A stretch of 64,000 nt of DNA from Piromyces finnis finn (lineage: Eukaryota; Fungi; Neocallimastigomycota). Under the pieces are notes generated by a model, which was not told where the DNA came from, searched no databases, and saw nothing but the letters and a program-made list of their open reading frames with translations. Below, piece by piece: positions 19,451 to 63,400 of the stretch. The position numbers and the translations under genes were made by a program. Every line of letters starts with the position of its first letter. The stretch's first letter is position 1. The DNA is taken from assembly GCA_002104945.1 (NCBI GenBank), contig MCFH01000003.1, forward strand, positions 1,589,769-1,653,768, read 5' to 3'.

Positions 19451-19527
<77 letters not shown>

Positions 19528-31660: not shown

Positions 31661-34600
31661 CCTCTTGGGAACGTGCCTTCATTTATTTAATAAATGTAGT
31701 TTCTCAAGGGGGTCTACTCATGCTCATGGTACTGAGAGAGTAGAAAGAATTAAATCCAAGTATTGCGCAATGGATACTTGGTTAGTCTTTATTTGGAAAT
31801 ATTATTAGGACTAAGCTCATGGTACTGAGCGAACAGAGTTGATAATTTGAGTGTTAGTTGTTATATCATATATCCCTTACACCTTCAACTTATTTTTTAG
31901 ATAGTAGTTGCTTTAACAACTTTTATAACATATTATTTTAAACTTAAAATTGTTTGATTCGGTAGTATTAAATACTGATTTTGAATATTTCTTGATTTCA
32001 TTTTTATTTTAGCTTTCATCGATAATTTGTTATCCCAGTTTACTACTTATTCTCTTTGTTCTTTTATTCCTTTTTTATTCTTTATATGTTGATTAGTCAG
32101 ATAGTTTTGTTTTTTCAGTTAGTTGGTTATTCCTTTCATTTATTCTTGAGTTTCGTGTGGGGTGCAGCTTTCATTACTATAATCATATTTAATCTTTTAT
32201 TTTTTCTATTTTTATTATTTTCGAGGGGCGCGGCTTTTTTATTTTTCCTTTATGATTTTATATGATTCTAGTAATATCTTTTTTTATTTCTTATTTTTTT
32301 GTAACTCTAGATTTTCCAAGGAATCTCTTTTCTACTAACATTCTTTTGTATACTTTTTCTATCTCTTTTCTATATATATATATTTCTTATACTTTATATT
32401 ATATGTATATTTATATATCTGTATAACTTAATTAGGTTTATTATGGACTATTATGGTAAGTATTAACACCTTTTTTTCTTTAACATTTCTATTATCAAAG
32501 CTTCTATCCTGGAAAATCGAGTATTCTATTTTTATATTGTAAATACTACTCTTGTTTCAATTTTATCTTTAAAAAAAAAAAAAAAAAATTTTATTATGTT
32601 TACCCAAAATTCTTCAACTTTTTTCCATTATTTTTGATATAACAACTTTTCACTCTTATTATCTCTCTACCTTACAACATAAACAACCTATATGAATGTT
32701 CAATTTCAACAATCAGAATCAACACAATACAATAATCATCCAATAAATTATACAATTCTTATTAATATAAAGAGCTTTCAAAATACAGTTATAATACAGA
32801 AATCCAAAGTGATAGATATTCAAAATTTATCTTCCCGTTTAAAGTCTTCAGTAGAGTTAGAACTAAGTTTGTCAACAACTTAGCCACTTTTCCAGTTATA
32901 AAATTTAAAATATTGTTTGACAAATAATCCACTTGCTATATAATATATCCGTCTTTACTATTATTATTTTTATTTTACTATATATTTTATTTCATTATCT
33001 TATTTATATCATTATATCAATACTTCAAACTATTAATATCTATTGTCATAATAAGTTCTTTCAAAATGAACAATACCAATTGTACTGTACCTACCTTACG
33101 ACGTGGTCTTCGTTTCTTCGGATCTAACTCCAATAAATCATATCTAATTTTTATCCATGATCTTAGTTCATGGTCAAAACAACGACTAATGGAATTTCTT
33201 TTAAAGGACATTCAACCTTTCAATGATATTCTTCAATCCCTCACCAAAAAATATTCACAATCACTCGGTACCTATTTCATTCTTAAAGTCAATGGAAAAT
33301 GTCCGCTTAAAGCCATGTTACTTATACACTCACTTTCTGAAAAACTCCCAATCTCTAGTAAAATATCTTGGAAATTCATTGATAAGCTCAAAAACAATAG
33401 ATCATACAAAAAACAAACGATCTATCAAATCTACTACTGGTCCACTCTCTGACGATTTCTATTTTAGTCATCTAAGCTCTAATGCTTCCTTTTTCAACTT
33501 ATGTACTTGTTGGAACATCAATGGTTGGAACCCGGAGAAAAAGGACGGTGTTTTATACTTCATCTCTGTTTTCAAACCTGTATGTGTCTGTCTTCAAGAA
33601 GTAGGTAACAGCCAATTCCTCTGTGGTAATGCAATTCCCTCCCCATGCCTACCGAACTATAAACCAGTACACAGACGTGCTAATCCTAAAGTTCCAGGTA
33701 TGAGAGGACTTTACATTGGTGTTCATAATTCTTGTTCCTTTACTCCTGAACCTCTTCTATATAAGTACATCATTTCAGTTACAATATTGTCATTTTGGAA
33801 CCAGAGATGTACCATTGGTAATATTTACTTCCCGCAAACTAGATGGCCGGATGCTAGATTAATTGCCTTTGATGAACTTGATAAGTGGTTAACAACGCAT
33901 AACAAATTCAACCACCCAGCTATCCTTGTAGGAGACTTTAATATGTCAGCTATTAAAATCAAATCTTATATATCACAACACTTCCCGGATTGGACTATGG
34001 CTGAGTTAACTGGTAATAATTTTACCTGGGAAAAAGGATCTAAATCTTCATGCATTGATCATATTATATACAACAAAGCTATGACAGAACACATAAACAA
34101 ATTTTCAGTTTGTGAAGTTTTCCACGATGTTTCTGATCACAAACCGATCCTTGTGTCTTGTAAAAAAGACTCTTCGGATGGTTTCAAAAAGCCTAAGAAG
34201 ACCTTTAAGTGGTCAAGTCATATCTGTAACACAAAGTGTTCTGACATTCTTACTAGTAATCGCTTTGCTGTTCTAGCTTCCGAGCTTGAAGCTAATTGCG
34301 ATAGCCTTTCGGCTGACGATATGGTTTCAAGATTTTTAGATACTTCCAAAACTATAGGTAAAGAAATAAAAGCCATTGTGCCTGCAGATTTAAAAGGTCC
34401 AGCATTCCATTGCCCTCAATACATCAAAAACTTATCACATGAAAAACACCTGGCTTACAAAAATATTAAGCCCCTTTCAGATTGCGCTGACATGGAAAAT
34501 TATCTTAACCAGTTCTCCATATACCAAAATCTATGTAATACCATCAAAAAGGTTAAGAGCAAATTCAGATCCAATCTCTATAAAGCTAATATTGTTTCTA

Positions 34601-37430
34601 TCGGTAAACATTTTATTGATAAAAGCTTTAGACAAGGTTGGAAAGGCCTTAAAAAACTTGCCAAACCAAGTTATTCGTCCTCCCATGTTTCAACTATTAA
34701 GGACAAGAATGGCAAGGATTTATTTACTCCTCAAGAACAATTAAAACGTTGGGCTGAACATTATGAAAATCTTGCATCTGATGTTACAAATCACAGCTTA
34801 AATCGTGGTTACTGGGAAAGAGCCTTCCAATTCAACCATATCAATCAAATAGCATGGGATATAAATGGTCCCATTTCTATTGAGGAAATTAGAAATGTTG
34901 TTCTGTCAATGAAGAATAACAAGGCTCCAGGTCCCGATGGTATCCCAATTGAATTTTTCAAAGCTTTCTTTTGTAACGAAGAACTGGAGAAAGAACATAA
35001 GTCTGCTGGAAATTGTCTTAAATTAATTTTTAATAAAATCTGGAATGGTTCCTTTCCTTTGAAATGGAACTCTGCTGCTTCCATTGTTTCTATTCCAAAG
35101 AAAGGCGATCTTTCAGACTGTAATAATTATCGTGGTATTTCTCTCATCAATGTAGGTCTTAAAATTATTTCAAAAATTGTAACTAATAGAATTTCAAAGT
35201 ATGCTCTTTCTCATAATTTTATAAGACCTGAGCAATTTGGTTTTCGCAATAAAGAAGAATGAATTAGCTTATTTATTTCCATTAGAGAAGGAAATTTAAA
35301 GGAAAAGCCACTTATGTCGCCTTTCTAGACCTTAAAAAAGCATACGACTCAGTTCCTATTTTTAATATCCTTACAAAGTTATATAAATTAGGTATACGTG
35401 GTAAATGTTTTGATTTTCTCAATAATCTCTACTCTACCTCTAAAGCTCGTGCACGTTTCTTGGATATGCTTTCCAATGAATTCCCTATAAACCGTGGTGT
35501 AAGACAAGGATGTCCTCTTTCTCCTATACTGTTTAACCTCTTTATCAATGATATTTTAAATAAATGTGAAAGGCTTGGAGTTAGCTTAGGTAATAAACGT
35601 TGTTGTGGTGGCCTTTTCGCTGATGACATTGTTTTGATTGCTCCTAGTAAGAAGAACCTTCAAAAGATGCTCAATCTAGTCCTTGATTGGGCTAATTTAA
35701 ATGAAATGTCTTTTGGAATAAATAAATGTGCAACTATTGTTGTTAAACCTATCAACTTTAATAGATCCCCTAGTTATGTCGACCCAACATTTTACATCGG
35801 TATGTACTCGATTCCAAAGGTTTCTTGCTATACTTATCTTGGAATCCCATTCGACGAAGATCTTTCTTTGACTCCTATTCTGTCTAATATGTACAAAAAA
35901 GTTCAGAAATCTTTATTCTCTTTTAAGAACTTCCTCACCAACAATTGTGTTCCTATTGGCTTAAAAAACATAGTAATTCATTCTTATATTTTAAGCAAAA
36001 TCTCTTATTATGCTCCTTTGCTTGGTTCCAACAAAAATAGAACTAGAAGAGTCCAATTTCTTATCAATACTGCTGTTTTATGGAGTGTCAATAGCTTTCA
36101 CAATAAAAGTTTTAATAACAAAGATTTTGTTTTTGAACGAAATTCATTTATTAGTCTGTATGCTCTTACAAGAGATATGAAGATCCCTACCCTTTCAGGT
36201 ATTTGTGCTGCGCAACAAGTGAAATGCTTTGTTAAATGGAGAAAATCAAATTGTATAATTAAAGATCTCGTCCGATCTATTCCTCCCATGTCTCATTACT
36301 CTTGGGTCAAAGAATCTTGTTCACTACATAAGAAGCTTATGAAAATAAATATTAAAAGTACTAAAGATATTAGAGAATATTATTGGAATAATAGTAGCCT
36401 AAATAATGGAAGTAAAGCCCTCAGATATACTAACAACAAATTCCTTAATTCAAATCGCCTAATGCATATCGGTCTCAACAAACCTCACTTAAATTTAGGA
36501 ATTACCTGGATTATTCGTATTCGATGCGGTTATGAAAATACTACCCGAATTGCTATTGCCAGTAATAGAGTTACTCCTGACTGCCCTCGTGTCTGTCCAT
36601 GTTGCGGATATGACGAACAATCTTTTTACCATTGGATATTAGAATGTTCTGCATTCTCTGAATACAGAGCTTCTTAACTTAGCTTTCTTGACGATCTTTT
36701 TACCCTTTTTTACAATAAATATAAGAATCAATTCATCACATACTTACTCCCCGAAACGGAAGTAAGAAAAATAATTTATAACTATATTTTTACGTTCCTT
36801 CTTGGTGGAACTTTAGCTTATGATGAGCTACAAATCGATAAGGCGGAACAAAGACATTTGAATGAACAGCTTTACAGTTCATCGGGGTCTCATGTTCCAT
36901 ATGTAGAGGGTCTCGCGGCTTTTCTTACTAAAACAATCCCTATCATTAGTAGCTCTATGAAGCTACTTTTTGATAGGTTTAGTAAGACACCTAACGTAAT
37001 CAAGAGCGCCGACGTCGTACCGATATGGCAAAGGAACATTTCCAATGTTCCGTACACAGGGTTCAATGTTAGTATTTCCTCAAATTCGAATGAAAACATT
37101 ATGAACTCATGGGAGAGTTTAGTGGACACCACACTATCATACCTGATGTTACTTCTTTTTTTTATTTCATTTAATTTATTAGGTAGGGACCAATCCCACA
37201 CAGTACAAATTGCAGAGTTCATTGAACTTTTATGCAACTTAAATAATTATTTTATATTTTTTTATATTTATATTTTTATTTATATATATTTTATTATTTT
37301 TATTTATTATTTATTATATCATTATCAATATGTATTATCACCTAATATTATGTAATATCACTAATTAAGTAAGTAAATAAATAAAAGATGTGTATTCTCT
37401 TCCTAGTCTAAAAAAAAAAAAAAAAAAAAA
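31659..37430 (+). mobile_element. Apparently full-length, decayed non-LTR retrotransposon (APE-RT LINE, family 1; clade not determined)
   Basis: Contains APE, RT and C-terminal Cys/His domains and ends in A21 (37410..37430). Flanked by a candidate TSD: AATTGT(A)28 at 31625..31658 and AATTGT(A)26 at 37429..37460. Confidence 0.85.
33066..37355 (+). pseudogene. LINE family 1 polyprotein (N-terminal extension + APE endonuclease + RT + CCHC-like knuckle), disrupted
   Basis: APE motifs WNING, VCLQE, LVGDFN, CIDHII, SDHKP; RT motifs NYRGISL, QFGFR, FLDLKKAYDSV, GVRQGCPLSPILFNLF, LFADD, YTYLG; CPCC..HWILEC. Lesions: likely +1 in the A6 run 33408..33413, TGA 35260..35262, frameshifting deletion at ~35290, TAA 36675..36677. 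Confidence 0.9.
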
Positions 37431-44367: not shown

Positions 44368-45254
44368 ATAAGTAGATAACATTTATACAAAGAAATCATT
44401 ATTTTTAATATTATGAAATTATACCTTTTTTAAAGTATATATTTATATTTTTTGTTTATCCCAACTACTCAGTATAATTATCATCATTATTTCACCCATT
44501 AGTATTAAATTTATCATATATATATTATAAGTTTTATTTTTTTTTATTGAATATTTTATTTTTAAAGCATTATTATATCTTTAAGTAATAATTAATATCA
44601 CACAAACCTAAACTCCAATAATTCATTCTATTATTATTTAATTAGTATTTTTGGATTATTTTTACATTTTTGTAAAAAAAGAAAAGATAAAAAAGAAATA
44701 TTCATAAATATTCATAAAAAAAAAAAAAAAAGTATATTTATTTTTAATACAAAAATAAAAGTTTAAAAAAAATCAAAAAATAATTTTAAATTAAGAAAGA
44801 AAAAAAAAAAAACGTTGCTCACACTTTTTTTTTTTTTTTTTTAATTATTGAATGAGTAATGTTTTATAGAAATTAAATGTAATAGTCAAGGGAAGGAATA
44901 GCAATAATAATTATTTAAAAAAAAAAAACTAATATAATTAATACATTATAATTATGAAAGGAAAGATAATAATAATAATAAAAAAGAAAGATTATTATTA
45001 TATGAAAAAAATTAATATTATAATATTTTTTTTTAATTCATATAAATACCAAAGTAAAAATAAATAATTTTAAAAAAAAAAAAATATTGAAAATAATAAT
45101 AATAATAAAGAAATTGTATTTTATTATTAAAATAAAAGTATTATCATTATGCAATATCTAATACCCTCCTTTATTTTTGTTTCATTAAAACTATTTCTTA
45201 AATTTGTGTTGAATTGAACCATTTATAATTAAATCATTATTTTAATGAGAATTA

Positions 45255-45692
45255 GTTATAAGATAAATCTCTAATATCATATTAAAAATATATAATTAAA
45301 TAAAAATATTTTATTTTATTTAATAATTGTGGTATTTCGTAATATATCTATTTCCTATTTTATGATTAAAGAGTTATTTATGAATTACAAGCTTTCTAAA
45401 TTTGATAAATTTGAAAGTTCTGGTAGGGTCACACCAGTTAACTTATTTTTGGATAAATATCTATTTCAAATGAAATTTATATATAAAAAAAAAATTAACA
45501 TTTTAATAACAAATAAAAAAAATAAACTGGTTTAATAAAGAGGAATATTATTAAAAAATTAGATTACAAAGTTTTTAGTTTTGATAACTTTGCAAATTCT
45601 GGTGATATAGAATCAGCTAATTTATTACTAGATAAATCTCTATTTCAAAATGAAAATATAGATATCTATGAATAAAAGTAATAAATTATAAT
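45255..45692 (-). pseudogene. Orphan LRR exon cassette (two complete 72-nt LRR exons plus the start of a third)
   Basis: Exons 45639..45568 (DLSSNKLADSISPEFAKLSKLKTL) and 45460..45389 (YLSKNKLTGVTLPELSNLSNLESL) with intact splice sites. Exons and introns are close copies of ~53330..53745. The third exon breaks after DLSYN. Confidence 0.85.
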
Positions 45693-45719: not shown

Positions 45720-47995
45720 GGTAATTTCTTACTTAATTCATTTCCTTAATAAATTAATTTGGTTTCCTTCATTATCGATATATTTTTTTGTATCTGTAAT
45801 AAATTTATATGTATTTTTATCTATATTTTTGTTATTTGACAATTTTATACTATTTTCAACACCCTTTAATACTAATGTTTTACTTTCAGGCGAAATCTTC
45901 TCGTTTTTAATTATATCAATAGCATTACTGTTGTCTAAGTTTTCAAGGTCAAGATGATATAATTTATTTTGTGTATCTGAAAAATCATTTGAATAATATT
46001 CTTCTTTACCCAACTTAGATGCAATACTATTATGTAATTTGCAAATAACTTCACTATTATTTCTTAAATTACCGTTATTATATTCTTTAATATTTTTATT
46101 AAGTAATTCATGTAAATCATTATAGGTAGCTAATAACGTATCTCTGTAAACATCATCAATATTATCTATATCGAGTAATTCTATTTTTTCACACAGTTTA
46201 TTTATAGTATTTAACAAATCTTTTGAATCTGATACTATAGTTTTATGATCAACTTCAAAAGATACTCTTTCATTTTCAACTAGTACTAGACCATACATTA
46301 AATTACCATTATTTAGATTTACAATACCTGTTAAATTTTCAATAGAAACATTATCAATTTCAAATTACTGTTTTTAGATCCTGGTTCATTAGAAATATGA
46401 TATTTATTAAATACTTTACTATTCTCCTCATCACTGATATCTTCGCTTTCACCACTAACATCATTTTCGTCTTTACCATCATTATCAATATTATTATCGT
46501 CATTATCATTATCAATAATATCTTCTTCATTGTTATTATTATCATTGACATTATCAATAGTTGTACTAGTAATCGTAGTTGTAATATCTCCAAAGATTTT
46601 TCTGTGATTTTCTAAATTACTCTTAAAATAACCCTCCATTTCTATTACATCATTCTCATCAAAATTAATTAAAAGAGAATTATCACTACTTTCATATTTA
46701 GCTAATAAGCGTTTATATTGATTAATTGTATGATGATGGTCGATAAGATAACTAGAGCTTTCTTCCTTAGTTAAGCCATTTAAATTTTTGTCATAATTCT
46801 GTGATACATATTTCCATACATCAGTGATTTTTTCTGCATTCTTATGTAAAGCTTTTGGGTTAGATATATCGTCAATACTGTCATAATATGGCAAAAGATT
46901 TTTATCTAAATTTTTTTCTTTAAATAATTCTACTATATTTATTGTATTTAATCTAATATTATTATCAAAGGAAAGTCTTGTTGGATTTGTACAGGCATTA
47001 TTTTCTCCTTTTCGTATGCTTACCAACTTCGATCTTTGGCACATATTAACATTACTTATTGAAATTATATTACCCATCCAATCAAACTCAACATCCATTT
47101 CATATAAATGATCAGCAGTAATTCCAATACCATTTAAAGTAGCACTATTATTTACTGGAAAGAAATATTCAAAAATACTAGCACCAACAGTTAAAGTTAA
47201 TATTTTGGAATGTATTTCATTATTATTATTTCTATTATTATTTATAGGATTTGAAAAATTTTTTATAATTAAAGAAAAATTATAAAATTCCGATCTAGTA
47301 TTTTCATTAACAACATTACTGAAAAATCCTATGTAATCATGGTTATAATTTTGTTTTAGTTGATGCATTTCTAAAGCATCTCATAAAGGAATATTATTTG
47401 GATTATTTATAAAGGCATGTTGTTAAGAATATGTTGCACCAGAATTTCTATTGAAATACTTTAAAATTTTATTTGATTCTTTTAATACATCTAGGTTACA
47501 TATATGATTTCATTATGTTTTTTTCAAGGTTAACTAAATTATTATTATTATTATTATTATTATTATTTCTTAAAGTAAGAAAAAAATGCTGTTCAAATTC
47601 GCTATAAAAGCTTAAATCATGATTATTATTTACTTTAAATTCATTTAATTTAAAACCTTTGTTTAAACAATTATATAGAACATCTTTATATTTCTGTTTT
47701 TCAATTGCATCATTTATATTATCGTATTTATATTGGATATAATCATATTGAATTATATAATTATCAACAATAGCTTTAAATGAATTTCTTAATATACTAT
47801 TACTAATAGAATCACCATTTTTATTCCTATTTATATAACCAGTATCTCTAAATACAACGCCAGTAAAAATATTTAACTTTAAAGCAATATCTTTATAATA
47901 GCCGTTAGAATCATTAATATTATATTCTTTTCTATTATGATACTTAATAACAAATTCAGTGGCTCTTTTTTCTCCTCCATCTGAAGAAAATGAAA
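45720..47995 (-). pseudogene. Decayed large intronless gene X (Asn/Asp/Lys-rich, unknown family)
   Basis: ORFs 47496..48104, 46331..47368 and 45738..46298 can be chained through frameshifts near 47500 and 46350 and two in-frame stops (TAA, and TGA in PL*DALEM). Confidence 0.65.
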
Positions 47996-48001
47996 TAGGA
48001 T

Positions 48002-49500
48002 TATTCATGGTGTTACTGATGCTATTACAGATACCAATGGTGAAACAAATGAACAAAATTGGAGTCAATATTAGGAACATTCCGGTACTCAAGAATATAG
48101 TCATTTAAGTAAGGATGATTTTGATTATTATAATAATCAATATGAGGAAGTGAAAAAACTCAAACATGTTGAAAGTAAACATGAAAAATGTTTTTATGCT
48201 GGTTTAATTAATGGTATAAAAGCTATATGGGCCGTTACTAGTAAAGGTATTTCAAAAATATTTAAAGGTGGTAGTAAAAATGCAGCAAGTAACAATGCTA
48301 ATAAGCGATCTATAAGTGGAGGAAAAGGTGGAAATGTATCTAAACCGGTTAATAATAAATCTAGTAATAATAAATCTAGTAATGATAAATCTGGTAATAA
48401 TGAAAATAAAAATGAGAATAATAAGAATAATAATAAGGATTATGATAGTATTTTTTAAATCAGCAGATGCTGCTCAAGCAGGTATTGCTTATGCTTCGAT
48501 GATTCAAGAAGGGGATATTGCAAATAGAGAACATATTCAAACTGAAGTATGGAATCAAATGAATTACGATCAAATAGAATACTGGAATTATTGGAATTAT
48601 AATCAAACGAAAAGATGGAATAGTAAAAATTATGATCAAACAGAAAAATGGAATCAAAAAAATTATGATCAAACAAATTATTGGAATGACCCTAATTACC
48701 AACAAACTGAAGCCTGGAATACACTAAATTATGAATAGACGGAAAAATGGAATAATATTAATTATAATCAAACTGAGGAGATGGAATTGGAAAACATTTG
48801 ATCAAACTGAATATTGATATCACTCAATATAAATTAGCTAATTTTAATTATGATACTCAAGAATATTTTACTGAAAGGCAAGAAAGGTCAGATTTAGTTA
48901 TGGCTTTAGCAGGTCAACGTTTATCAAGCAATACAGAAGTTGAAGGTTCTAACGATGGCGGTTCAAAAATTAATTCAAAAGAGCATTCAAATTATAATTC
49001 TCATTCGCATGGTATAATGGATCAGAATAAAAATATTAATGGTTACTCGGATGCATATACTTTAGGTCACAGCGAGACATCCAATACAGAATTTTCCAGA
49101 AGTGATAATATTTCTAATATTTTATCTAATACTTATACTAAAGAAAACGGTTGGTCTAAAGAAAATAGTGAATCTAATACATCGACTAATGGAAGAACCT
49201 TTGGTAATAGTTATTCTAATTCAGTTATGAAAGAAATTTCTAAAGAAGATACTAAAACAATTTCAACAGAAAATACAAATAGTAGAATTGTTTCTAATAC
49301 CGTTTTTATCATGGAGTAATTGGTTTTTAAGAAAAAATAATTATCATAGAAGATATATAGAACCATTAGTATATGCAATATCTTCATGTAATTTAGATTA
49401 CCATATATATTTAATATGTATAGTTATGAGCAACCAAATCATGATGGAATTCAAATCGACCCTTATTTCAATAATTTATTACCAGGTGAAATGGTAATAA
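48002..49500 (+). pseudogene. Decayed intronless gene Y with 11-aa W/N/Y/Q repeats and a Ser/Thr-rich region
   Basis: A protein-like reading from IIHGVTDAITDTNGETNEQNW runs into ORF 48150..48458 and continues via frameshifts and stops into 48316..48738 and 48798..49319. Repeats follow NYxQTExWNxx. Confidence 0.65.
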
Positions 49501-50064: not shown

Positions 50065-51856
50065 TCAATTGTTTGGTTTAATAACAATATCACTACATAT
50101 CTCATTATTATTATTATTATTAGTTTTGTATTGCTGTGAAGATACTGTACTACTCATATTACTACTTTCATCATTTTCATTATTACTATTTCTTCTTTTA
50201 TTTTTTAAATAGACATAGAATGTTGATAAAGCAATAAATAATACACATGGGATAACTAGACATATTATAATTATTAATTTAATATTAGTGCTCTTTGTTT
50301 CTAATAAAGGATTATTAGCAATATACCTTTTGATAATGAATTTAAAATTATTAATATGTTAGCTAAACAATGAAATTTTAATAAGATATAATATAATATA
50401 AAATGATATTTATCTATTTTTATGTTAAAATAAATGAAATTAATTACAATTTTATATTCGATTTTTGGATTTCTTTCGGAACGAATCCACTTAAATTATT
50501 AATAGATAATTGCCTAATTAAAAAAATAATAAATAAAAATACAAATAAAATTAATAAAAAGTATAATAAAATAAATAAGAAAAAAATGATGAATTTCATA
50601 AGAATAATAAAAAGTGAATTACAAAGTATTTAATTTTGGTATTTTTGCAAGTTCAGGTGGTATGGAGCCAGTTAAATTATTAGAAGATAAATCTCTATAT
50701 CAAATGAAAATTATTAAAAATGAAGATTTAGCACATTAACAGTAAGTGATAGTAATAAGAATATAGAATTAAAATTTTAAAAAAAAAAAAAATAAATTTA
50801 CAAAGTTTTTAGTTTTGATAATTTTGCAAGTTCTGGTGGAATAGAACCACTTAATCTATTATCCCTAAAATTTCTATATTAAATAAGAAAATAGGAATAT
50901 TTATGAATAAAAGTAATAAACAAAACATAAATTATTATATAGTATAAATTTAAATACAAATATTCTAGGTTTATTAAGTTTCCAAGTTCTGGTGGAATTG
51001 AATCACTTAATTTATTATGGGCTAAACATCTTTTTAAAGAAAACAATAAATTAATCATTAGAATAAAAATGTATATAACTATTAATTCATTCCATTATTA
51101 CAAGTATTCTAAATTTGATAAATTTCCGAGTTCAGGTGGAATTGAACCATTTATTTTACTTTTACCAAAGTATCTTTTTATAGAAAATAATAAATTAATA
51201 CATAATAATAATAATAATTTATAATATCAATAAGGAAGAAAAAAATATTTCAGTTATTACAAATATTTTAAATTAATTAAATTTCCAATTTCTGGTGGTA
51301 TAGAGACAGAATGAGTTTTGCCAGATATATTTCTTTTTTATTAGAAATAAAAATATATTAATAAATATATATTCAATTATTGAAATGAAAAAGTTTAAAT
51401 TTTGCTTTAAAAAGAAATGTTTATGTTTTTTTTTCATATAACCATTTAAAATAGTTTATACTTTTATATTTTTAAATATATATTAAATAGAAAGTATATC
51501 TATTATTATAAATATCTTAATAATAATAATAATAAAAAAAAATCTTATTCATTGTTCATTACTTTATTTTTTTAATAAAAAATATAATATATTACTTTTA
51601 CTATTTTATTAACGGTTTTATATATATATATTTCATATAAAGTAAAAAATTAAAATATTATAAAATATATAATATATTACATTTTAGTAATATGACCATC
51701 ATTTGAACAAGTCACTCCTTCTTCTTGACAACAATTGTATGTCTGATTTTTTTGTAATAATTCATTTACCACAAAACACTCTTCATTAATAGTACTTTGT
51801 GCAGAAATGCATTTTACAGTAATAATAAGAGTAATTAATAAAATAAATATATTCAT
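50065..51856 (-). CDS. LRR receptor-like protein A (signal peptide, Cys cap, 6 LRR exons, TM, short tail; 287 aa)
   Basis: Exons 51856..51681, 51332..51261, 51173..51102, 51029..50958, 50873..50802, 50694..50623, 50513..50448, 50326..50065. All introns are phase-2 GT-AG and the total is 864 nt with no internal stop. MNIFILLITLII signal, CCQEEGVTC..GHIT cap, GSIPPELGNL repeats, TM IIIICLVIPCVLFIALSTFYVYL then KNKRR. Confidence 0.88.
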
Positions 51857-52719
51857 AATGGTAACTTATCTATTTATTATTATTTAAAAAAAAATTAAAA
51901 ACTAGAACCTTTTTAAACATAAAATCATACAATATCTTTTATTTATAATTCTACACTTAAAGTTTTTTAAAATAATACTATTTATAGTAGTTACAATAAA
52001 AGTTTGGTATTAAATAGTATAGACTAATAGATAAAAACAAAATAAAAATAGGATTTATAAATATTCATTCTATTCATTCCATACATTAAAATAAAGATTA
52101 AAAATTACAAAAATACTAGTATATATTTATTTAATTTTTTATTGTCATGACGAGTAAAATATTGATAATACTATATTTTATACATTTTATTTATTTCCTT
52201 TTTTTTTGGTAAAAAGGGAAAGAATATTTTTACCTTTTATAATGATTAAATAGTTATGATAAATAATTTTTTTACCATGGTAAAAATAAAGTAATTATTA
52301 AATCATATTGGTATTTCTTTCTATGAAATAGAATATTCATAAAAAAATAAAAGTTTAATTCTTTATCAATATGTATTATTTAAAAGTTTTTATAAACACT
52401 TTTTGGATAATATAGTTAGTATCTATTAATTATATAATACTGTAATTTTTTTATGAGTACTATTTATTGAATTAAAAATTATAATTATTTATGGATATGA
52501 TTTACAATGATAAAACAGAAATTTATTTAAAAGAAAAAAAAAAGGATGATATTGTTAATTAATATATATAGGTTTAATGAGTGTAGAGCTAGTTAATAAT
52601 ATATTTTATATTTATAATTTTCATTATAAACTATTATAAATAAAAAATAAAAAAGAAAGTAAAATATATAAATGTATAAATTACTTTCTTTATTAAACTT
52701 TAAAATTGTCTCCATCATC

Positions 52720-55005
52720 TCAAATGTTAGATTTAATAATAATATCGCTACATACTGCATTATTATTATTAGTTTTATATTGCTGTGAAGATGCTGAATC
52801 ACTTATATTACTTCTTTCATCATTTCCATAATTTAGATTTCTTTTATTTTTAAAAAATACATATAGTACTGCTAAAACAATGAATATTAAGCATGCAATA
52901 TTTAGAACTATTATAATTATTAATTTAATATTAGTGCTCTTTGTTTCTAATAAAGGATTATTAGCAATATACCTTTTGATAATGAATTTAAAATTATTAA
53001 TATGTTAGCTAAACAATGAAATTTTAATAAGATATAATATAATATAAAATGATATTTATCTATTTTTATGTTAAAATAAATGAAATTAATTACAATTTTA
53101 TATTCGATTTTTGGATTTCTTTCGGAACGGATCCACTCAAGTTATTATTAGATAAATTTCTATTTAAATTGAAAAATAAAGTTTTTAGTAACGTAGTAAA
53201 AGAACAAAAGGTAAATATATATATATATATTTATTTATAAAAATGATAAAATGTTATAATAATAATTACAAATTTTTTAATTTTGTCAATTTTGCAAGTT
53301 CAGGTGGTATGGAGCCAGTTAAATTGTTATAAGATAAATCTCTAATATCATATTAAAAATATATAATTAAATAAAATTATTTTATTTTATTTAATAATTG
53401 TGGCATTTCGTAATATATCTATTTCTTATTTTATGATTAAAGAGTTATTTATGAATTACAAGTATTCTAAATTTGATAAATTTGAAAGTTCTGGTAGGAT
53501 CACACCAGTTAACTCATTGTTGGATAAATATCTATTTCAAATGAAATTTATATATAAAAAAAACTAACATTTTAACAAAAATAAACTGGTTTAATAGATA
53601 GGAATATTATTAAAAAATTAGATTACAAAGATTTTAATGTTGATAACTTTGCAAATTCTGGTGATATAGAATCAGCTAATTTATTACTAGATAATTTTCT
53701 ATTTCAAAATGAAAATATAAATATTTATGAATAAAAGTAATAAATTATAACAAATTTTTTATATTTTACTTTAATATAAATTTAAATACAAAATTTCCAA
53801 GTTTTTTAAATTTTCAAGTTCAGGCGGAATATCACCAGTTATTTCATTAGAATTTAAACATCTTTTAAATTAAAATAATAAATGAATCATAAGAAAATAT
53901 TTTTCAATTATAACTATATTAAAAGTTATTTTTTTAATTCATTACAATTCTTTTAATTTTGATAAATTTCCTAATGAAGAAGGGATTGAACCTGTTATAT
54001 TATGTCCTTGTATCGACCTTTTTTTTTATTTTTTTAAAAAAAAAAATAAATTAAAATAAAAAAAATCGGAATAAAAACTTTATTAAAAAAATAATAATAT
54101 TAATAATAATTTTTTTTCCTAAATACTAATATTTTAACAATTACAAATATTCCAAATTCGATAATTTTCCAAGTTCTGGTGGTATGGAATCAGTTAAATT
54201 ACCCCCACGTATTAATCTATTATAAATATAATTAAAATATTTATTTCAATAATAAAAATATATATAAATAATAAATTATTTCTTTTAATACAAATATTCC
54301 AGATTTAATAAATTTCCAAGTTCAGGTGGAATGGAACCATTTAAATTATTACTACGTATGTGTCTATTTGAAATAATGATATAATAATAAAATTAAAGCT
54401 TAATAAGTAAATGTTTATCAATGATAAATAATAAATTATTTGCATCAATACAAATATTTTAAATTAGCCAAGTTTCCAATTTCTGGTGGTATAGAGAACG
54501 GTTTAATACTATTTATATGAAGAATTCTTTTTTTTTTTTTTTTTTTTTTTGATAAAAATATAAAAATATTAATAAAAATATATACAATTATTGAATTGAA
54601 AAGATTTAAATTTTGGTTATTAAAAAAATTGTTTTTAAATAAAGTCATTTAAATCTATTTTTTTTATCTATAAGTAAAATAAACAGAATAAATAAGGGAA
54701 ATATAAAATAATACTTATACCATTGTATAAAAAAATTCTATACTATTTTTTTTAATATTTTAAAAGTAAATACTGAACATTATTTAAAAATAAGAATTCG
54801 GTTTGTTTTAAAACAAAATATATCCTATAATTCATTACATTTTAGTGATATGACCATCAGAACAAGTAACTTCTTGACAACAATTGTATGTTTGATCTTT
54901 TTGTAATAATTTATTTGCTATAGAACATTCTTCATTAATAGTACTTTGTGAAGAAATACATTTTATTGTAGTAATAAGAGTAATTAATAGAAATGATATG
55001 TTCAT
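52720..55005 (-). CDS. LRR receptor-like protein B (signal peptide, Cys cap, 9 LRR exons, TM, short tail; 354 aa)
   Basis: Exons 55005..54839, 54526..54452, 54363..54292, 54216..54145, 54017..53946, 53861..53790, 53698..53627, 53531..53460, 53341..53270, 53159..53094, 52972..52720. All phase 2, 1065 nt open. Confidence 0.88.
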
Positions 55006-55859
55006 AATTTATATATTTATTTATATATTTATTTAAAGAGATGCATTATAAAATTGAGTACTTTTAACCTAATAGATTTTCAATAAAAAAAAATTAAGCT
55101 TTTTAAAGTAAAAACTATTTTTAGTAATAAAAAAAAATGGCATTAAAAAAAAGGTGTATTGAAAGTTAAATAGTTATTCGGTACATTATAAAGACTTAAA
55201 AAAATAATTATATATAGATATATTTTTAGTTTTAAAATGAAATTAAAAATATGTAATAGTATAAATTTTTTGGAAAAAAAATAAAGTTTATTTTTTTGAA
55301 GTGCTTTAAAGCTGCTTTACAAAGTTGTGATAAAAATGAATAATTATTAAAATTTATTATTGATGAATTAGTATATATCCTAGATTTTGGAAGGGTTTTT
55401 TTAGGCAGAATTTTGGCCAGGCAAATTTTTTGTCTGGCTAAAAAAATTACCTACAGATTTAAAAATTATGATATTGTTATGTCTTTTTTATAAAATAATA
55501 TATACTTTTAATTTTTTTTCAAAGAATAATTATTAATACATTTTATTCTATATATACTATATAATAGTTTTTATAAATTCTTATTAACAGATAGTATTAT
55601 TTATTAAATTTGTAATTTATTATTTTTTTATGGCTATAGTTTATAGTGAAAAAACAAAAATACGTTAAAGAAAAATATTATCATTGTTAATTTTAATATA
55701 TATATAATAATTTATAATATAATGAAAAAGACTAATATTTTCATTATAAAATAAGATAATAAAAAGTAAAATATAAATGTATAAAATTCGTTTTTTTTTT
55801 TTTTAATAAAGTTGAACTTCTTCCTTCTCGTAATTATTAATTTTAATAATAATATTACA

Positions 55860-57090
55860 TAATAATATTACTATATATATTTCATTATTATTAATACTTT
55901 TATGTTACTGATGATTTCCTTATATCTCTATTAAGTTATTTCTCTGATTCGTATTATTTTTTCTATTTTTAAAATACATATACCATTACTAAAACAATAA
56001 ATAATACACATACAGTAATGGTACTTAATATGATTACTAGTTTTATATTAATACTTTCAATTTCATTTGTTTTATTGTTTAGTAGGTATCTTTTAAAATA
56101 AAAAGAATATTTATTTTTTTAATTATTATAAAAATAATTTTTAATAATAATTTTTTTAATCCATTACAATTATAATTGCATTAATTTTGACAAAGTTCCT
56201 AATGAAGAAGGGATTGAACCTGTTATTAGACTAAATTGAATCCATCTTTTTTTCTATTATTATTATTATTAATTTTTATATAAAAATTTATTAAATATTT
56301 TTTTTCATACTATAATACTTTAATTATTACAAATATTTCAAATTTGATAAATTCCCAAGTTCATGTGGTATTAGACCAGTTAAATTATTTTCATACAAGT
56401 GTCTATTTCAAATATTATTAAAAACAAAATAAAACTATTAATGATTATTCCAACGCTTATTTCAATAAGTATTAAATATATATAATAAATCATATCTATT
56501 AATACAAATTTTCCAAATTTGTTAAATTTCCAAGTTCTGATGGGATATGACCGGTTAATTTTCCACTTATTTCCTATTTCGAATTATATTGATATAAACT
56601 CTTAATACACAGCAATTTATTTATAATGATAAATAATAAATTATGTTAATTATTACAAATATTTTAAATTAGTTAAAATCTTAATTTCAGGTGGTATAGA
56701 AATTAAAGGACTAGCATTGACATATACATTTCTTTTTTTTAATAGAAATATAAATATTAATATATATATAATAAAATAAATAAAAAAAAAGTTTGAATTT
56801 ACATTAGAAGTTATTCATATAGCCATATAACCATATAACCATTTAAAAAATTAAAATATGTTTTATATTTTTAAATAAAATAAATAAAAGAAACACAAAT
56901 GAAAAAAGAATCTTATTAATATGTAGTATTATTAAGACTATAATTATTTAATAAAAAGAAACGTAGTATAATTATAATTATTAATTAAACTACTTCATTA
57001 ACATTTTTACATTTAATAAAAAGTAAAAACTAGATTTTGTTTCATATAAGAAATTTAGTTTACATTATTTATTACAGTTTAGTGATATGA
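55860..57090 (-). pseudogene. LRR receptor-like gene C, pseudogenised
   Basis: Only the HITKL end of exon 1 remains (57090..57077). LRR exons 56731..56657, 56573..56506 (68 nt, frameshift), 56402..56331, and 56245..56174 (donor GTAATT mutated to ATAATT). The TM exon starts at 56089 and has a small deletion giving a stop just after the TM. Confidence 0.82.
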
Positions 57091-57413
57091 AAAAAAAAAG
57101 TATATTTTTAACTTTTTAAAAGTAGAACTTTAAGTCGTGACAGAAATGGATAATTATTAAATTTTATTATTAAGTTTTTTTTTATAAATGTATTAACAAA
57201 GAAAAGAATGTGTATTAATAAATTTTATTCAATATCCAAATTTCATTATACTCTTCTTTGACAAAAAAAAATTTTTTTAATAATAACAACTTTAAGGTAA
57301 AAAAAAAAAACTTTATAAGTATTAAATTAAACCAAGGATATTTATGAATAATCATCATTTTTGATAAAAAAAACTATGAAACTATGGAACTTTTTTATTT
57401 TTTTTTTTATTAA

Positions 57414-59099
57414 TTAAAAAAAAGATTTAGGATGAGAAGGATGTTTTGTTAATAGTATTTCTTTTATTAAGGCATCTTCAATAGCTTGATACCTTTTAGT
57501 ATTAAGTTGTTTTAAAAGATGATCATATACATCAAATGTATTACTTAATATCATGTTAGATATTTCAGATGTAAATCCATTAATATAAGAAATACCCATG
57601 TCATTTTCTATTATAGGAATTGTTGGGGTTGTGGTTGTATTTGATTCATCGCCTTGAAGATTCCAAACAATTAATTTTGGTAAGGTGTAGCCCATTGCCT
57701 CAAATTTAATTTTCATTGTTTCAAAAAAGGCTTTTGTCGGTTTCTCCGACTTATTTCCTATACTAATTTTTTGATCAAATATATTGTTGGATAGAAGAAG
57801 AAGAGTTGAAGGAAGTTCTTCTCTACCTAAATGATGATCCATGGCATGTTTTAATATCAAATGATAAACTTCTTCAAGATTACAATTTTCTTCAAATTGA
57901 TAGGAATGTAAAAACTCTAATTTTTCTTTTAAATTCGTACAGGTTTTCAAATCAATGAAATGTGGATTGGAATTAAAGGTAATATAATGATTTTTAAAAT
58001 GGGGTCCTGAAAATCTTTCGGAAAAATAAAGGGTAAAAGCATGAGCTATTTCCATACATGTAATAGCTTTTGATACCTTATCCTTTAACATCCTTTGTGA
58101 ATTATCGGTAATACAAATTGTATAACCATTACCATTATTACCGTCCATCTCTTCCTTATGGAATAAATTTTTCCAAAGAAGTTCCAACCTATTATTTCTT
58201 TTTACCTTACTATCCGTTGTATTAGTCTGGTATTCATGAACAATTTCATGAGGTAATAATTTAAACATCTTTTCTGCTACTTTTTCTTCTTCTTCTTCTT
58301 CTTTTATTTTGGTTAGATAGGCAATTCTTCTCTCTTCATCATGTTTAAGAAAAGCTTTCTGATATTTAAAATTGGCTTTAAAAGGAACAATGGAATAATC
58401 AATGTTATTCCATTTTTTAGCACTTAAATCAACTTCTACAATTTTTAGATAGGATCTTAGAGTCGATAACGTTTTACGGTATTGTCGTTCTGTCATTTTT
58501 AACTTTTGTATTAGTTGATGGGCTAATTTTTTGGTTTCTTTTGATGAGGTATTGACCGATGGCATCCATTTGGCACAAAGTGATATAGCATTTTTTCTAT
58601 TATTCATTTTCATATTACGTTTATCTTTTTCTAATTGGTTTTTAATTAGGGCTACCACATCATCTTCTAAAGGACTTTGCATAAAACTTAAAATATCATC
58701 CCAACGACCATAGTCTGGTATTAAAGGTAAAACAATTTTTGCTACTTCTAAATGTTCTTTTATTACATAGTTAAAACAACTACGAAATAACCTTCTTTCC
58801 CCTTCCTTACCCTGACCATTCCTTTTTCTACAATCTCTAATGTAAAATAACCATTTCATTGCATGTATCCTATTCTCTTGATAAACTTTTGAAAAATGTT
58901 CTTGAATCGTAGATTCTTTCATTTTTCTCATAGATAAAATGGAATAATTCATGGTAATTAATTCTTTTCCTTTGGCTGTTGTTGTTGTTGTTGTTGTTGT
59001 TGCTGCTGCTGCTGCTGTTGACGATGTCGTTTCCATTGTCTGTATTATTGTATCATTTATAGTCACTGAATTATTATTATTATTATTATTTGTAGTCAT
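57414..59099 (-). CDS. DUF2828-family (TROVE-like helical + vWA) protein with degenerate MIDAS, intronless
   Basis: Family motifs LFYIRD.R...GERRLFR, LIPDYGRWDDI, SLCAKWMPS, ERQYRKTL..LR, IDYS.VP, AFLKHD, LPHEIV, ITFNSNP, GYTLPKLIVWNL. DxSxS reads DNSQR. Confidence 0.85.
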   Translation of the reverse strand: MTTNNNNNNNSVTINDTIIQTMETTSSTAAAAATTTTTTTTAKGKELITMNYSILSMRKMKESTIQEHFSKVYQENRIHAMKWLFYIRDCRKRNGQGKEGERRLFRSCFNYVIKEHLEVAKIVLPLIPDYGRWDDILSFMQSPLEDDVVALIKNQLEKDKRNMKMNNRKNAISLCAKWMPSVNTSSKETKKLAHQLIQKLKMTERQYRKTLSTLRSYLKIVEVDLSAKKWNNIDYSIVPFKANFKYQKAFLKHDEERRIAYLTKIKEEEEEEKVAEKMFKLLPHEIVHEYQTNTTDSKVKRNNRLELLWKNLFHKEEMDGNNGNGYTICITDNSQRMLKDKVSKAITCMEIAHAFTLYFSERFSGPHFKNHYITFNSNPHFIDLKTCTNLKEKLEFLHSYQFEENCNLEEVYHLILKHAMDHHLGREELPSTLLLLSNNIFDQKISIGNKSEKPTKAFFETMKIKFEAMGYTLPKLIVWNLQGDESNTTTTPTIPIIENDMGISYINGFTSEISNMILSNTFDVYDHLLKQLNTKRYQAIEDALIKEILLTKHPSHPKSFF

Positions 59100-60450: not shown

Positions 60451-63400
60451 TAAGAAAGCCACTATTATACTAAAGTATAATAATTGTATTTGACTTCCAA
60501 TGGGACACCGAGCCAAAGATCAAAATTTTATCATGGAACAAAATTATGATCTCCATTGCTTGCGCTGGCCCTCCTGGCCTGTCTTACTGTTTCTTCAGCA
60601 TTGACGCTCTTGGATGTTGCTTCAAACCTTTTGAACATTGACCATTGCTGGCCAATAGCAAAAGGCATGATTTTGGTTAGAAGTTCCGCGGTTACCGTCA
60701 AGAATGGTGTTCCTTCATTAGTACCAGATTGAATCTGACGCTTACAAAGTTCTTTCCATTCCCTTGAATTGTAATTAATATTGTTAAAACTTCTTCCCCC
60801 AAGAAGGAATTTAAATATTTTACTGCACACACTAGAATAATCATACACATTAATATTCACCGGATTATTAGAACTATTACTATCATTAACTAAATTACTA
60901 TCTAAATTAGAATTATTATCATCACTATTGCTATCATTACTAATATTATTATTTCTATTACTACTATTGTTATTATTACTATTGTTACTATTACTATTGT
61001 TATTACTACTATTGTTACTATTACTATTAATGTTATTGCTATCTCTACTGATATTAACATTTTCATTATTATTGATAGGACTATTGGAATTACGTTGACT
61101 GAAAAAATTTAATAGATGGACTATAGAATCATAATGTTTAATACGGATATCTCTAAATGTTGGACAATCTAATAACCAATGTTTAATACTTTGATCTCCA
61201 CACTTACAACATGGACAGTAGTTAGGACAAACTGGATCAACAAATTTAGCAGCTTTGGCAACTCTAGCATCCAACTTGTATCCGCTTCTTGCTTTCAATA
61301 GCCAGTAGAAGCCATAGGCAAACTCTGGGTATTCATAACATAATTTAATAAAATCTTTTGTTTCAATAAATTTATTATCATCATAATATTGCGCTTTGAT
61401 TGAATTCCCTTTGAGATCTTTCCAATAAAAGTTTTTAACTGCTTTAACATCTCCATGTTTCTTTAGTTTTTTATCAAGTGTCCTACTTGATTTGCACCAC
61501 GTGTATTTTCTAAATTTAGGAATGTAATTGACAAGGTGTGAGATAATACAATTTGAGTTTTTCCATTTGTTAAAACATCTAACCTGAGCTAACGCACATT
61601 TGGCTGACAATGGAGGAATATTCAAATCTTTTGAGATAGAGTATAAAGATATAAACGATACAGCTTTATGAACTCCGGCAACCCATCGTATTCCTTTGTT
61701 AACATGTTTCTGAGCAATCCTAGACCTAGCTTTGTTGGATCCAAGTAATGGTGCAAAGTATGAAACTCTGCTAATCACTTGTGAGTTAAGTACTAGCTTT
61801 TTGAAAGGAATAGGAATATTAGGATTTCTTAAGAATTTACTGACTGAAAAAAGTCCTTTCAAAACTTTGTTATTAAGAATTTTAATAACTGGTTTAAGGG
61901 ACAGATTCTTATCAAATGGAACACCAAGATAAGTATAACAATCAGTAGTTGGAATGGGTTGTCCTGCTAAGTAAAATGTTGGATCTCTCTTGTTCTGATT
62001 TTCTATTGATTCAGGACGAATCACCATCGTTGAACATTTCTGGATACCAAATTCCATTTCATTATACAAGGCCCATTCATTAACTCTTCTAAGCATCTTT
62101 TTTAAGCATCCTCTTGTTGGAGCACAAATAACTATATCATCTGCAAAAAGTCCACCACAGCATCGAGTGTCACCTAAACTGACTCCGAGATCTTCACACT
62201 CTTTAAATATATCATTAATAAAGAGATTAAAGAGAATAGGAGAAAGAGGGCATCCTTGACGGACTCCTTTCTTCACATCAAAAGATTTCGAGAATTGTCC
62301 ATCTAATTTGACATTAGCCTTAGATGTTAAATATAAATTTTTGATGAATTGTAAACTCTTACCTCGGATTCCTAAACAATCTAATTTATGGAGAATATTA
62401 CCGATTGGGACTGAATCGTATGCTTTCCTGAGATCTAAAAAGGCCAAATATGTCTCTTTATTATCTAATTGACGTCTACGGCATATTTCTTGGATTGAAA
62501 TGAAAAGACTGATACTTTCTTCCTTTTTTCGAAAACCAAATTGTTCAGGTCTAATGAAATTATTCTTTAGACCATATTCTGAGATTCTAGTGGTGACAAT
62601 TTTGGAAATCAACTTAATACCATTATTGATAAGTGATATACCTCGATAGTTATCACAATCTGTCAAATCTCCCTTCTTAGGAATAGAAACAATACTGGAT
62701 TCATTCCATGAGTTGGGGAAATCTCCATCCCAAATACGGTTGAATAATTTAAGAATAAAATTTAAACCATGAGCATCATTATCTGAAGTAGTATTACCAG
62801 AAGAATTATTACCTGTAGCATTATTAGAATCATTACTTGATGGAACTAATGCTTTGTAAAATTCAATTGGAATACCATCTGGACCTGATGCTTTATAATT
62901 TGGAGTAGTGAGGATAGCTGACTTGACTTCATCAATACTAATATCTTGGTTGATATCCCACTCATCAAGCATAGGAAGTGAAAAACGTTTATTCGTTGGT
63001 TCTTCATACCAATGCTCCAAATCAAGACTTACACCACTTGGATCTGATGCAAGGTTTTCGAAATGATCATGCCACACTTCAAGTTGTTCTTCCGTAGCAA
63101 CAACTAATTCTCCATTTTTATTTTTAATTGGTTGAGCAATAAAGAAAGAATCTTTTCCAATTTTTGCAGTTTTCTTGATCCATTTCCAGGCCTTCTTAGG
63201 ATTATGACTCTTCATATACTCACATCCTGTTTTAATCCAATGAAGATATTCTTGCTTCCTAAATTCATTACATCTTTTGTGGATGTAATCAATGAGCTTA
63301 CGGTAGATTTTAATTCTTTTAATAAATTCATCTATATCATAAATTCTTTCTTTTTTAAATCTCTTATACAACTTCATTTTGATTTTTTGAAGATTAAAAA

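Follow-up and report, generated by a model that had tools for sequence, protein, structure and literature searches.

At the end of scaffold MCFH01000003.1 of the anaerobic gut fungus Piromyces finnis (assembly GCA_002104945.1) lies a cluster of genes for leucine-rich repeat (LRR) proteins in which each repeat of plant type is encoded by an exon of its own. The stretch that we analysed, here called the window, is the terminal 64 kb of this scaffold (positions 1589769-1653768; G+C content approximately 17%); six-frame translation placed the LRR peptides between 45.3 and 57 kb, all on the minus strand, and the cluster lies 7-14 kb from the scaffold end. The cluster probably represents a P. finnis birth-and-death family of type-I membrane LRR proteins, with two intact genes (A and B), one pseudogene (C) and one fragment (D). 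Each protein consists of a signal peptide, a four-Cys N-terminal cap, 6 to 10 plant-type LRRs, one transmembrane (TM) segment and a non-catalytic tail of 45-50 residues. The evidence consists of the gene models, the fold, an exon design identical to that of plants, purifying selection on the repeat scaffold, rapid and almost neutral change on the concave face, collinear exon order, gene conversion and pseudogenisation. An earlier note, made from the letters of the DNA, had described the cluster as a diversifying recognition repertoire built from interchangeable exons; the cluster looks instead like the product of ordinary gene-family duplication rather than an exon-mixing recognition system. 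The gut fungus that the note had named as host is correct: three open reading frames of the window match database proteins exactly, which places it on this scaffold, and MCFH00000000 denotes the Pirfi3 genome of Piromyces finnis, derived from a horse isolate (PMC6712302).

Joining the minus-strand LRR peptides at GT-AG sites yielded models of the two intact genes:

Gene A: 50065-51856, minus strand, intact, 8 exons, 287 aa
Gene A exon 1: 51856-51681, minus strand, signal peptide and Cys cap
Gene A 72-nt LRR exons: 51332-51261, 51173-51102, 51029-50958, 50873-50802 and 50694-50623, minus strand
Gene A 66-nt LRR exon: 50513-50448, minus strand
Gene A last exon: 50326-50065, minus strand, C-terminal cap, TM segment, tail and stop
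Gene B: 52720-55005, minus strand, intact, 11 exons, 354 aa, span 2286 nt
Gene B exon 1: 55005-54839, minus strand
Gene B 75-nt first LRR exon: 54526-54452, minus strand
Gene B 72-nt exons, first four: 54363-54292, 54216-54145, 54017-53946 and 53861-53790, minus strand
Gene B 72-nt exons, last three: 53698-53627, 53531-53460 and 53341-53270, minus strand
Gene B 66-nt exon: 53159-53094, minus strand
Gene B last exon: 52972-52720, minus strand

All splice-site pairs of the two genes (17/17) and both reading frames are intact. The product of gene A is identical letter for letter to P0155, recorded as 'L domain-like protein [Piromyces finnis]', with the same span as annotated, and gene B agrees with the public annotation in both its span (2286 nt) and the length of its product (354 aa). 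The system had been called invisible in the open reading frame (ORF) track, which holds for a view of single-exon ORFs only, as both intact genes were already publicly annotated. LRR exons measure 72 nt in five of six cases in gene A and seven of nine in gene B; the others are the 66-nt last LRR exon of both genes and the 75-nt first LRR exon of gene B. Introns are 72-127 nt long except intron 1 (312-348 nt), and all are in phase 2: they split a Leu codon as TT/A or TT/G after every LRR exon, and a codon as AT/A after exon 1. The split codon is followed by x-[L/I/F]-x-x-N at 15 of the 15 LRR-exon junctions, and shifted self-alignments with introns included revealed tandem exon-plus-intron units of approximately 150-170 nt. 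The models thus bear out what the earlier note had said of 72-nt one-LRR exons (66 or 75 nt at the ends) and of the Leu split, and also that the LRR exons, all of phase 2-2 and multiples of 3 nt, could be skipped or swapped with the frame kept. Most LRR-exon donors of A and B read TT/GTAA, at which an unspliced intron would give Leu and then a stop, truncating the protein after a whole repeat.

This layout has a close counterpart in plants. In rice LRR-kinases, a phase-2 intron splits the first Leu of xxLxLxx, and the usual exon is 72 nt long and encodes one repeat, with variants of 75, 69 and 66 nt (PMC3050792); there are 26 introns in the ERECTA and ERL genes (PMC3682895). Because x-[L/I/F]-x-x-N follows it, the split Leu of A and B is the same Leu as in rice, and, by the published rice description, the intron position, phase and exon sizes of A and B are the same as those of plant LRR-kinases.

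The Pfam, PDB, AlphaFold and Foldseek analyses of a whole protein refer to the gene A product. In both A and B, exon 1 encodes the signal peptide and the four-Cys cap, and the final exon a short 'NNPLL' cap remnant, the TM segment and the tail. The putative signal peptide of A is a hydrophobic N-terminus (model helix 2-20), the LRR strands occupy residues 56 to 204, and a hydrophobic TM segment (218-241, within model helix 207-246) precedes a tail of 46 residues that has no Pfam domain; across the family, tails are Ser/Asn-rich and 45-50 residues long. Pfam LRR_1, LRR_4, LRR_8 and LRR_14 matched above cut-off. The repeat belongs to the 24-residue plant-specific (PS) class with the consensus LxxLxLxxNxLxGxIPxxLGxLxx: over twelve 72-nt exons, L1, I12 and L22 are invariant, N6, L8, G10, P13, P14, E15, L16 and L19 dominate, and the most variable positions are the exposed x of xxLxLxxNx. 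A phmmer comparison with the PDB placed GSO1 at the top (476 bits), followed by FLS2, MIK2, RGFR, PEPR1, ERL1/2, BRI1 and PGIP, and the alignment extended into the last part only of the cap (fungal 'CCQEEGVTC' versus plant 'CSWTGVTC'). The single-sequence AlphaFold model (predicted local distance difference test, pLDDT, 70-90 over the repeats) shows seven evenly spaced beta strands in an LRR solenoid, a TM helix and a disordered tail, and its best Foldseek matches are RGFR1, FLS2, SERK1/2 and PGIP. The receptor-like-protein architecture that had been proposed (signal peptide, Cys cap, LRRs, one TM segment, kinase-less tail) is therefore present in A and B; the consensus agrees with the proposed 24-aa plant-type LRR, the closest solved structures by sequence and fold being plant LRR receptor ectodomains; and the variable concave-face residues noted on a fixed scaffold do fall on the exposed x of xxLxLxxNx. 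The solenoid would be curved and extracellular, its concave face would bind an extracellular ligand, and the proteins, which have no kinase, would either pass signals on via a partner or serve in binding or adhesion.

The last of these options amounts to an alternative in which genes and evolution are the same, and the products are adhesion or wall-contact proteins, facing plant fibre, partner microbes or the fungus's own wall, and not signalling receptors. It accords with a tail that has neither a kinase nor another signalling domain nor a PPxY motif, and with a TM segment devoid of GxxxG, a motif found nowhere in A or B. Many plant receptor-like proteins (RLPs) use GxxxG in the TM helix to bind the adaptor kinase SOBIR1. 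The ectodomain carries 6 to 9 N-glycosylation sequons; kinase-less plant LRR proteins such as PGIP, one of the best structural matches, are purely binders; and dockerin-joined LRR modules are among gut-fungal cellulosome candidates (PMC12421816). A tail segment, SSQQYKTN ... I-I-K-x-N, is however common to A, B and, in a shifted frame, paralogue Q of a second P. finnis locus (L001, described below), which hints at an interaction in the cytosol. On balance we judge a purely adhesive role unlikely, and retain the broader description of a duplicated family of type-I membrane LRR proteins.

In the reading of the earlier note, the symmetric one-repeat exons are interchangeable modules that are skipped, duplicated or swapped to supply an immune-like or microbe-sensing repertoire. 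For the ROCO genes of Ectocarpus, exon shuffling was recognised from relic LRR exons lying within introns or opposite the coding strand, from exon relationships that scramble paralogy and from positive selection (PMC3341825), and we adopted these criteria, including in the comparison the second locus on scaffold MCFH01000066.1, which holds at least three more paralogues (P and Q among them). An nhmmer search of both strands of the window and L001 with a 72-nt LRR-exon nucleotide profile and filters off revealed no inverted, intronic or extra relic LRR exons; the significant matches were modelled coding-strand exons only. The note had expected per-exon phylogenies to be discordant; instead, supported clades of the exon tree follow position across A, B, C and the L001 paralogues P and Q. 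They comprise the 66-nt last-LRR exons {A7,B10,P11,Q8} (support 0.98), the 'SIPSS' exons {B5,P5,C5} (1.0), the first LRR exons {A2,B2,C2,Q2} (0.81) and {A6,B9} (0.89). Free best exon matching between gene pairs scored approximately the same as order-preserving matching. Exon order showed 2 of 36 possible inversions between B and P, a degree of collinearity that no order reached in 20,000 randomisations (P < 1e-4), and 1 of 15 between A and B. Because clades follow position, order is collinear and the units are tandem, the array predates the gene duplications and its order has been kept, an outcome that the note itself had named as refuting its idea. Symmetric phase-2 exons are expected anyway from repeated duplication of one exon-plus-intron unit. 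The one-repeat-per-exon phase-2 layout would thus have arisen by repeated tandem duplication of a single such unit, and unequal crossing-over, rather than a programmed exchange of exons, would account for changes in array length.

Selection was estimated as the ratio of nonsynonymous to synonymous change (dN/dS, or omega) by the Nei-Gojobori method on positionally matched exon pairs of A, B and the L001 paralogues. Scaffold codons gave a dN/dS of approximately 0.3, and the A, B family is therefore under constraint. At concave-face codons (the exposed x of xxLxLxxNx), dN/dS was 0.93-1.19, not above the synonymous rate (Fisher P 0.72), with nonsynonymous change 3.8-fold commoner than on the scaffold (P 1e-14); the A versus B comparison gave a concave dN/dS of 2.2 on 12 synonymous sites only (P 0.52). 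Relaxed constraint on the exposed face apparently explains these concave values. A and B also share an identical run:

Gene-conversion tract: gene A 50263-50483, gene B 52909-53129, minus strand, 221-nt identical run with flanks 60-75% identical

Within it lie the 3′ half of the 66-nt exon, the last intron in full and the first part of the final exon, and because 221 nt are identical while the flanks are only 60-75% so, the tract is the result of recent gene conversion.

Taken together, these results make an exon-mixing repertoire very unlikely. In its favour are the frame-safe phase 2-2 exons in multiples of 3 nt, the greatest variability at concave positions, birth and death in the cluster together with an ectopic two-exon fragment, and precedents in the Ectocarpus ROCO genes and the 90-bp exon arrays of Tetrahymena. 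Against it, exons group by position in collinear order, the key Ectocarpus signature of inverted, intronic or extra relic exons is absent from both strands searched, omega is not significantly above 1 (Fisher P 0.5-0.7), and the locus has two intact genes only, the ectopic fragment being unannotated and unconstrained. The idea that interchangeable exons form a diversifying repertoire thus finds no support, given position-wise clades, collinear order, the absence of relics and a concave dN/dS of approximately 1, not significantly above it. Like the Ectocarpus ROCO genes, the P. finnis genes have one LRR per exon, clustering, pseudogenes and a variable concave face; in Ectocarpus, however, LRR exons occur in introns and on the non-coding strand and paralogy is scrambled, neither of which is seen in the P. 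finnis loci searched, and the ROCO proteins are cytosolic GTPases whereas those of P. finnis are membrane-anchored. The Tetrahymena arrays of 90-bp LRR exons are of clonal origin by unequal crossing-over and lie near elements resembling long interspersed nuclear elements (LINE-like elements) and chromosome ends. The P. finnis genes resemble them in equal-length LRR exon arrays, an extreme phase-2 bias and a junction codon common to neighbouring exons, and also in setting, with a scaffold end, which may not be a chromosome end, 7-14 kb away and reverse transcriptase (RT) ORFs at 60.5-63.4 and 33.2-36.7 kb; they differ in exon length (72 versus 90 bp), LRR class and the thousands of genes per genome in Tetrahymena. 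Assembly in the manner of variable lymphocyte receptors is argued against by germline genes A and B being complete.

The remaining copies of the cluster attest to gene death and fragmentation:

Gene C, pseudogene: 55969-57089, minus strand, absent from the public annotation
Gene C exon-1 relic: 57089-57076, minus strand, 14 nt only, with neither start codon nor signal peptide
Gene C 75-nt LRR exon: 56731-56657, minus strand
Gene C 68-nt LRR exon: 56573-56506, minus strand, frameshift
Gene C 72-nt LRR exon: 56402-56331, minus strand
Gene C 72-nt LRR exon: 56245-56174, minus strand, donor GT changed to AT after 56174
Gene C last exon: 56089-55969, minus strand, stop directly after the TM segment
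Orphan two-exon fragment D: 45250-45691, minus strand, D1 at 45639-45568 and D2 at 45460-45389

Gene C has no 66-nt exon. Promoter-region homology at 57090-57171, which matches B 55276-55361, directly abuts its 14-nt exon-1 relic, and most of exon 1 has therefore been deleted. The three tandem paralogues of full architecture that had been described come down to A and B, as gene C, with its exon-1 loss, frameshift and lost donor, is a pseudogene. Fragment D is a copy of gene B 53322-53750, which takes in exons 7 and 8 with their introns plus 20 nt from the beginning of exon 9, and is 92.8% identical to it over 442 nt. Mismatches number 10 in 164 exon positions versus 9 in 265 intron positions, and the coding differences are nine nonsynonymous to one synonymous. 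Because divergence is no lower in its exons than in its introns and nine of ten coding differences are nonsynonymous, the fragment is unconstrained; it lies in unannotated intergenic DNA and is covered by no gene model. We also considered whether the fragment forms part of the upstream gene, and rejected this, as no model covers it and no constraint is seen. The piece at 45.3-45.7 kb, named a cassette in the earlier note, is thus a decaying fragment and not a functional cassette.

It is extremely unlikely that the whole region consists of non-functional DNA in decay close to a scaffold end, with the intact-looking models as chance survivors: one of three copies is dead with a fragment nearby, LINE-like elements flank the region and neither database records nor the metagenome scan yielded a transcript of A or B, but a scaffold dN/dS of approximately 0.3 over A, B and the L001 paralogues, 17/17 splice-site pairs and two intact frames stand against it.

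Several observations nevertheless weigh against the account of a functional, conventionally evolving receptor-like family. The Pfam profile of the plant N-terminal cap, LRRNT_2 (PF08263), was not matched in the gene A product even at E <= 5. In the records searched, no transcript was found for A or B, and P0155 is recorded on a genome contig only; a metagenome scan with protein A likewise yielded no close fungal relative or transcript, and three distant loci only, one of which is an intronless plant-type receptor kinase gene. The middle exons, as 72-nt sequences, are poorly resolved in the tree, and a few best matches fall out of order. Finally, a concave dN/dS of approximately 1 may also be compatible with mild diversifying selection.

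Other searches bear on the extent and expression of the family. Two distant relatives with the order signal peptide, cap, LRRs and TM segment, P0023 and P0024, come from JGI (Joint Genome Institute) datasets, on intron-free contigs of approximately 1 kb with 22-23% G+C. Because these contigs are intron-free with short flanks, and one ends in a short run of A, they are consistent with being transcripts of family members. In the protein collection, the exon-1 ORF of gene A had no exact record as a single-exon gene call. An exon-1 search of 1.84 billion representatives gave 31 matches, mostly single-exon calls of 58-83 aa, with the A and B models absent. Generic LRR proteins, for the most part from metagenomes but including some named ones of bacteria and plants, dominated whole-protein searches with P0023 and P0155, in which the fungal paralogues were not among the matches listed. 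A mixed profile of a full-length relative and window exons recovered the gene A product and missed that of gene B. In the second locus, the paralogue at L001 6001-8113 has the same exon design and is publicly annotated as a 60-aa protein over exon 1 only (P0001); compared with the conserved SSQQYKTN segment, its tail carries a frameshift, and one of its introns contains approximately 200 nt of (ATT)n. As a lead only, a gene of Pecoramyces with the annotation LRR receptor-like kinase is among the ten most down-regulated genes in methanogen co-culture (PMC6414434).

The most interesting point of the locus is the origin of the intron position that it shares with plants. The P. finnis proteins are like plant RLPs and rice group-5 LRR-kinases in their 24-residue repeats, signal peptide, Cys cap, single TM segment and short tail, and like rice LRR-kinases in their 72-nt one-LRR exons, 66/75-nt variants and phase-2 split of the first Leu. 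Unlike plant receptors, they belong to a fungal genome of approximately 17% G+C, have no kinase and have a cap that LRRNT_2 does not recognise; unlike plant RLPs, they have a TM segment without GxxxG and a tail unrelated to plant tails. The nearest database sequences over the gene A repeats are metagenome proteins, and because many of them lie on Mb-scale contigs or are joined to Big_2 and T9SS-sorting domains, these relatives are probably bacterial. The top-scoring one, P0073, shows 59% identity with gene A across the repeats; its ORF is uninterrupted, with an fn3 domain and near-ideal 24-residue 'LSGSIPPELGNLSNLEYL' repeats of the same consensus as the fungal ones, and it adjoins a Y2 transposase gene (L010, JGI metagenome 3300037247, contig Ga0392330_0042692). 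Such 'GSIPPELGNLSNL' bacterial LRR proteins thus share the idealised consensus, with up to 59% identity to gene A, but differ in having no introns, N-terminal cap or TM tail and in being joined to fn3, Big_2 or T9SS domains. A bacterial origin was considered on repeat identity alone and rejected, because identity is inflated by idealised repeats and introns are absent from bacteria. Repeat similarity by itself is no pointer to plants either, and only the intron position in common with plants and the motif in the cap point to a eukaryotic, plant-like ancestry. The chance that a single intron gain falls at the same one of 72 positions is approximately 1.4%, assuming uniform insertion and ignoring splice-site preferences. 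The exon-plus-intron unit and plant LRR receptor genes may have a common origin, through transfer of a plant gene with its introns into a plant-eating fungus or through ancient eukaryotic descent.

At the RNA level, regulated skipping of the symmetric exons may produce receptors with different repeat numbers, and intron retention may produce secreted, cleanly truncated LRR decoys, as most donors encode Leu and a stop when read through. We consider such a splice-diversified surface recognition family in a fungus quite improbable.

LRR pattern-recognition receptors are reported to be absent from Dikarya, with few such genes in early-diverging fungi, according to those parts of PMC13618815 that draw on Soanes & Talbot 2010 and later work, and LRR receptor-like genes are reported to be mostly missing in Dikarya and present in chytrids (PMC13618815). 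Equal-length LRR exons with phase-2 introns have been described for plants (PMC3050792), for brown algae, with shuffling (PMC3341825), and for Tetrahymena. In the literature we found no description of the one-LRR 72-nt phase-2 exon design in anaerobic gut fungi, and a published horizontal-transfer survey makes no mention of LRR genes. With A and B already known from the public annotation, the locus shows nothing beyond ordinary gene-family evolution: the family consists of plant-type LRR receptor-like proteins with a plant exon design in a gut fungus, and its evolution proceeds through tandem duplication together with unequal crossing-over and gene conversion. The combination of plant repeat type, intron position, phase and exon size in a fungus raises the question of whether it stems from common descent, from a plant-to-fungus transfer or from convergence following acquisition of a bacterial-type repeat, and the family offers candidates for the sensing of plant fibre or microbial partners by anaerobic fungi.

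Elsewhere in the window, a single 1227-aa ORF at 17759-21442 (plus strand) encodes a RING-H2 finger (residues 829-873); no identical ORF is present in the protein collection, and the public model is therefore a different one. Asn-rich ORFs with no Pfam match occupy 45741-48104 (minus strand), upstream of the orphan LRR fragment, and are split in the public annotation into products of 255 and 202 aa. The neighbour of pseudogene C, at 57414-59099 (minus strand), encodes a 561-aa DUF2828/DUF7788 protein, its ORF being identical to the public P. finnis P0151. LINE-like retroelement ORFs flank the LRR cluster at 33223-36677 (plus strand) and 60531-63377 (minus strand). One element has an endonuclease and the start of the RT followed by a separate ORF with the remaining RT, the other is a single 948-aa RT ORF, and these ORFs have a G+C content of 29-34%, above that of their surroundings.

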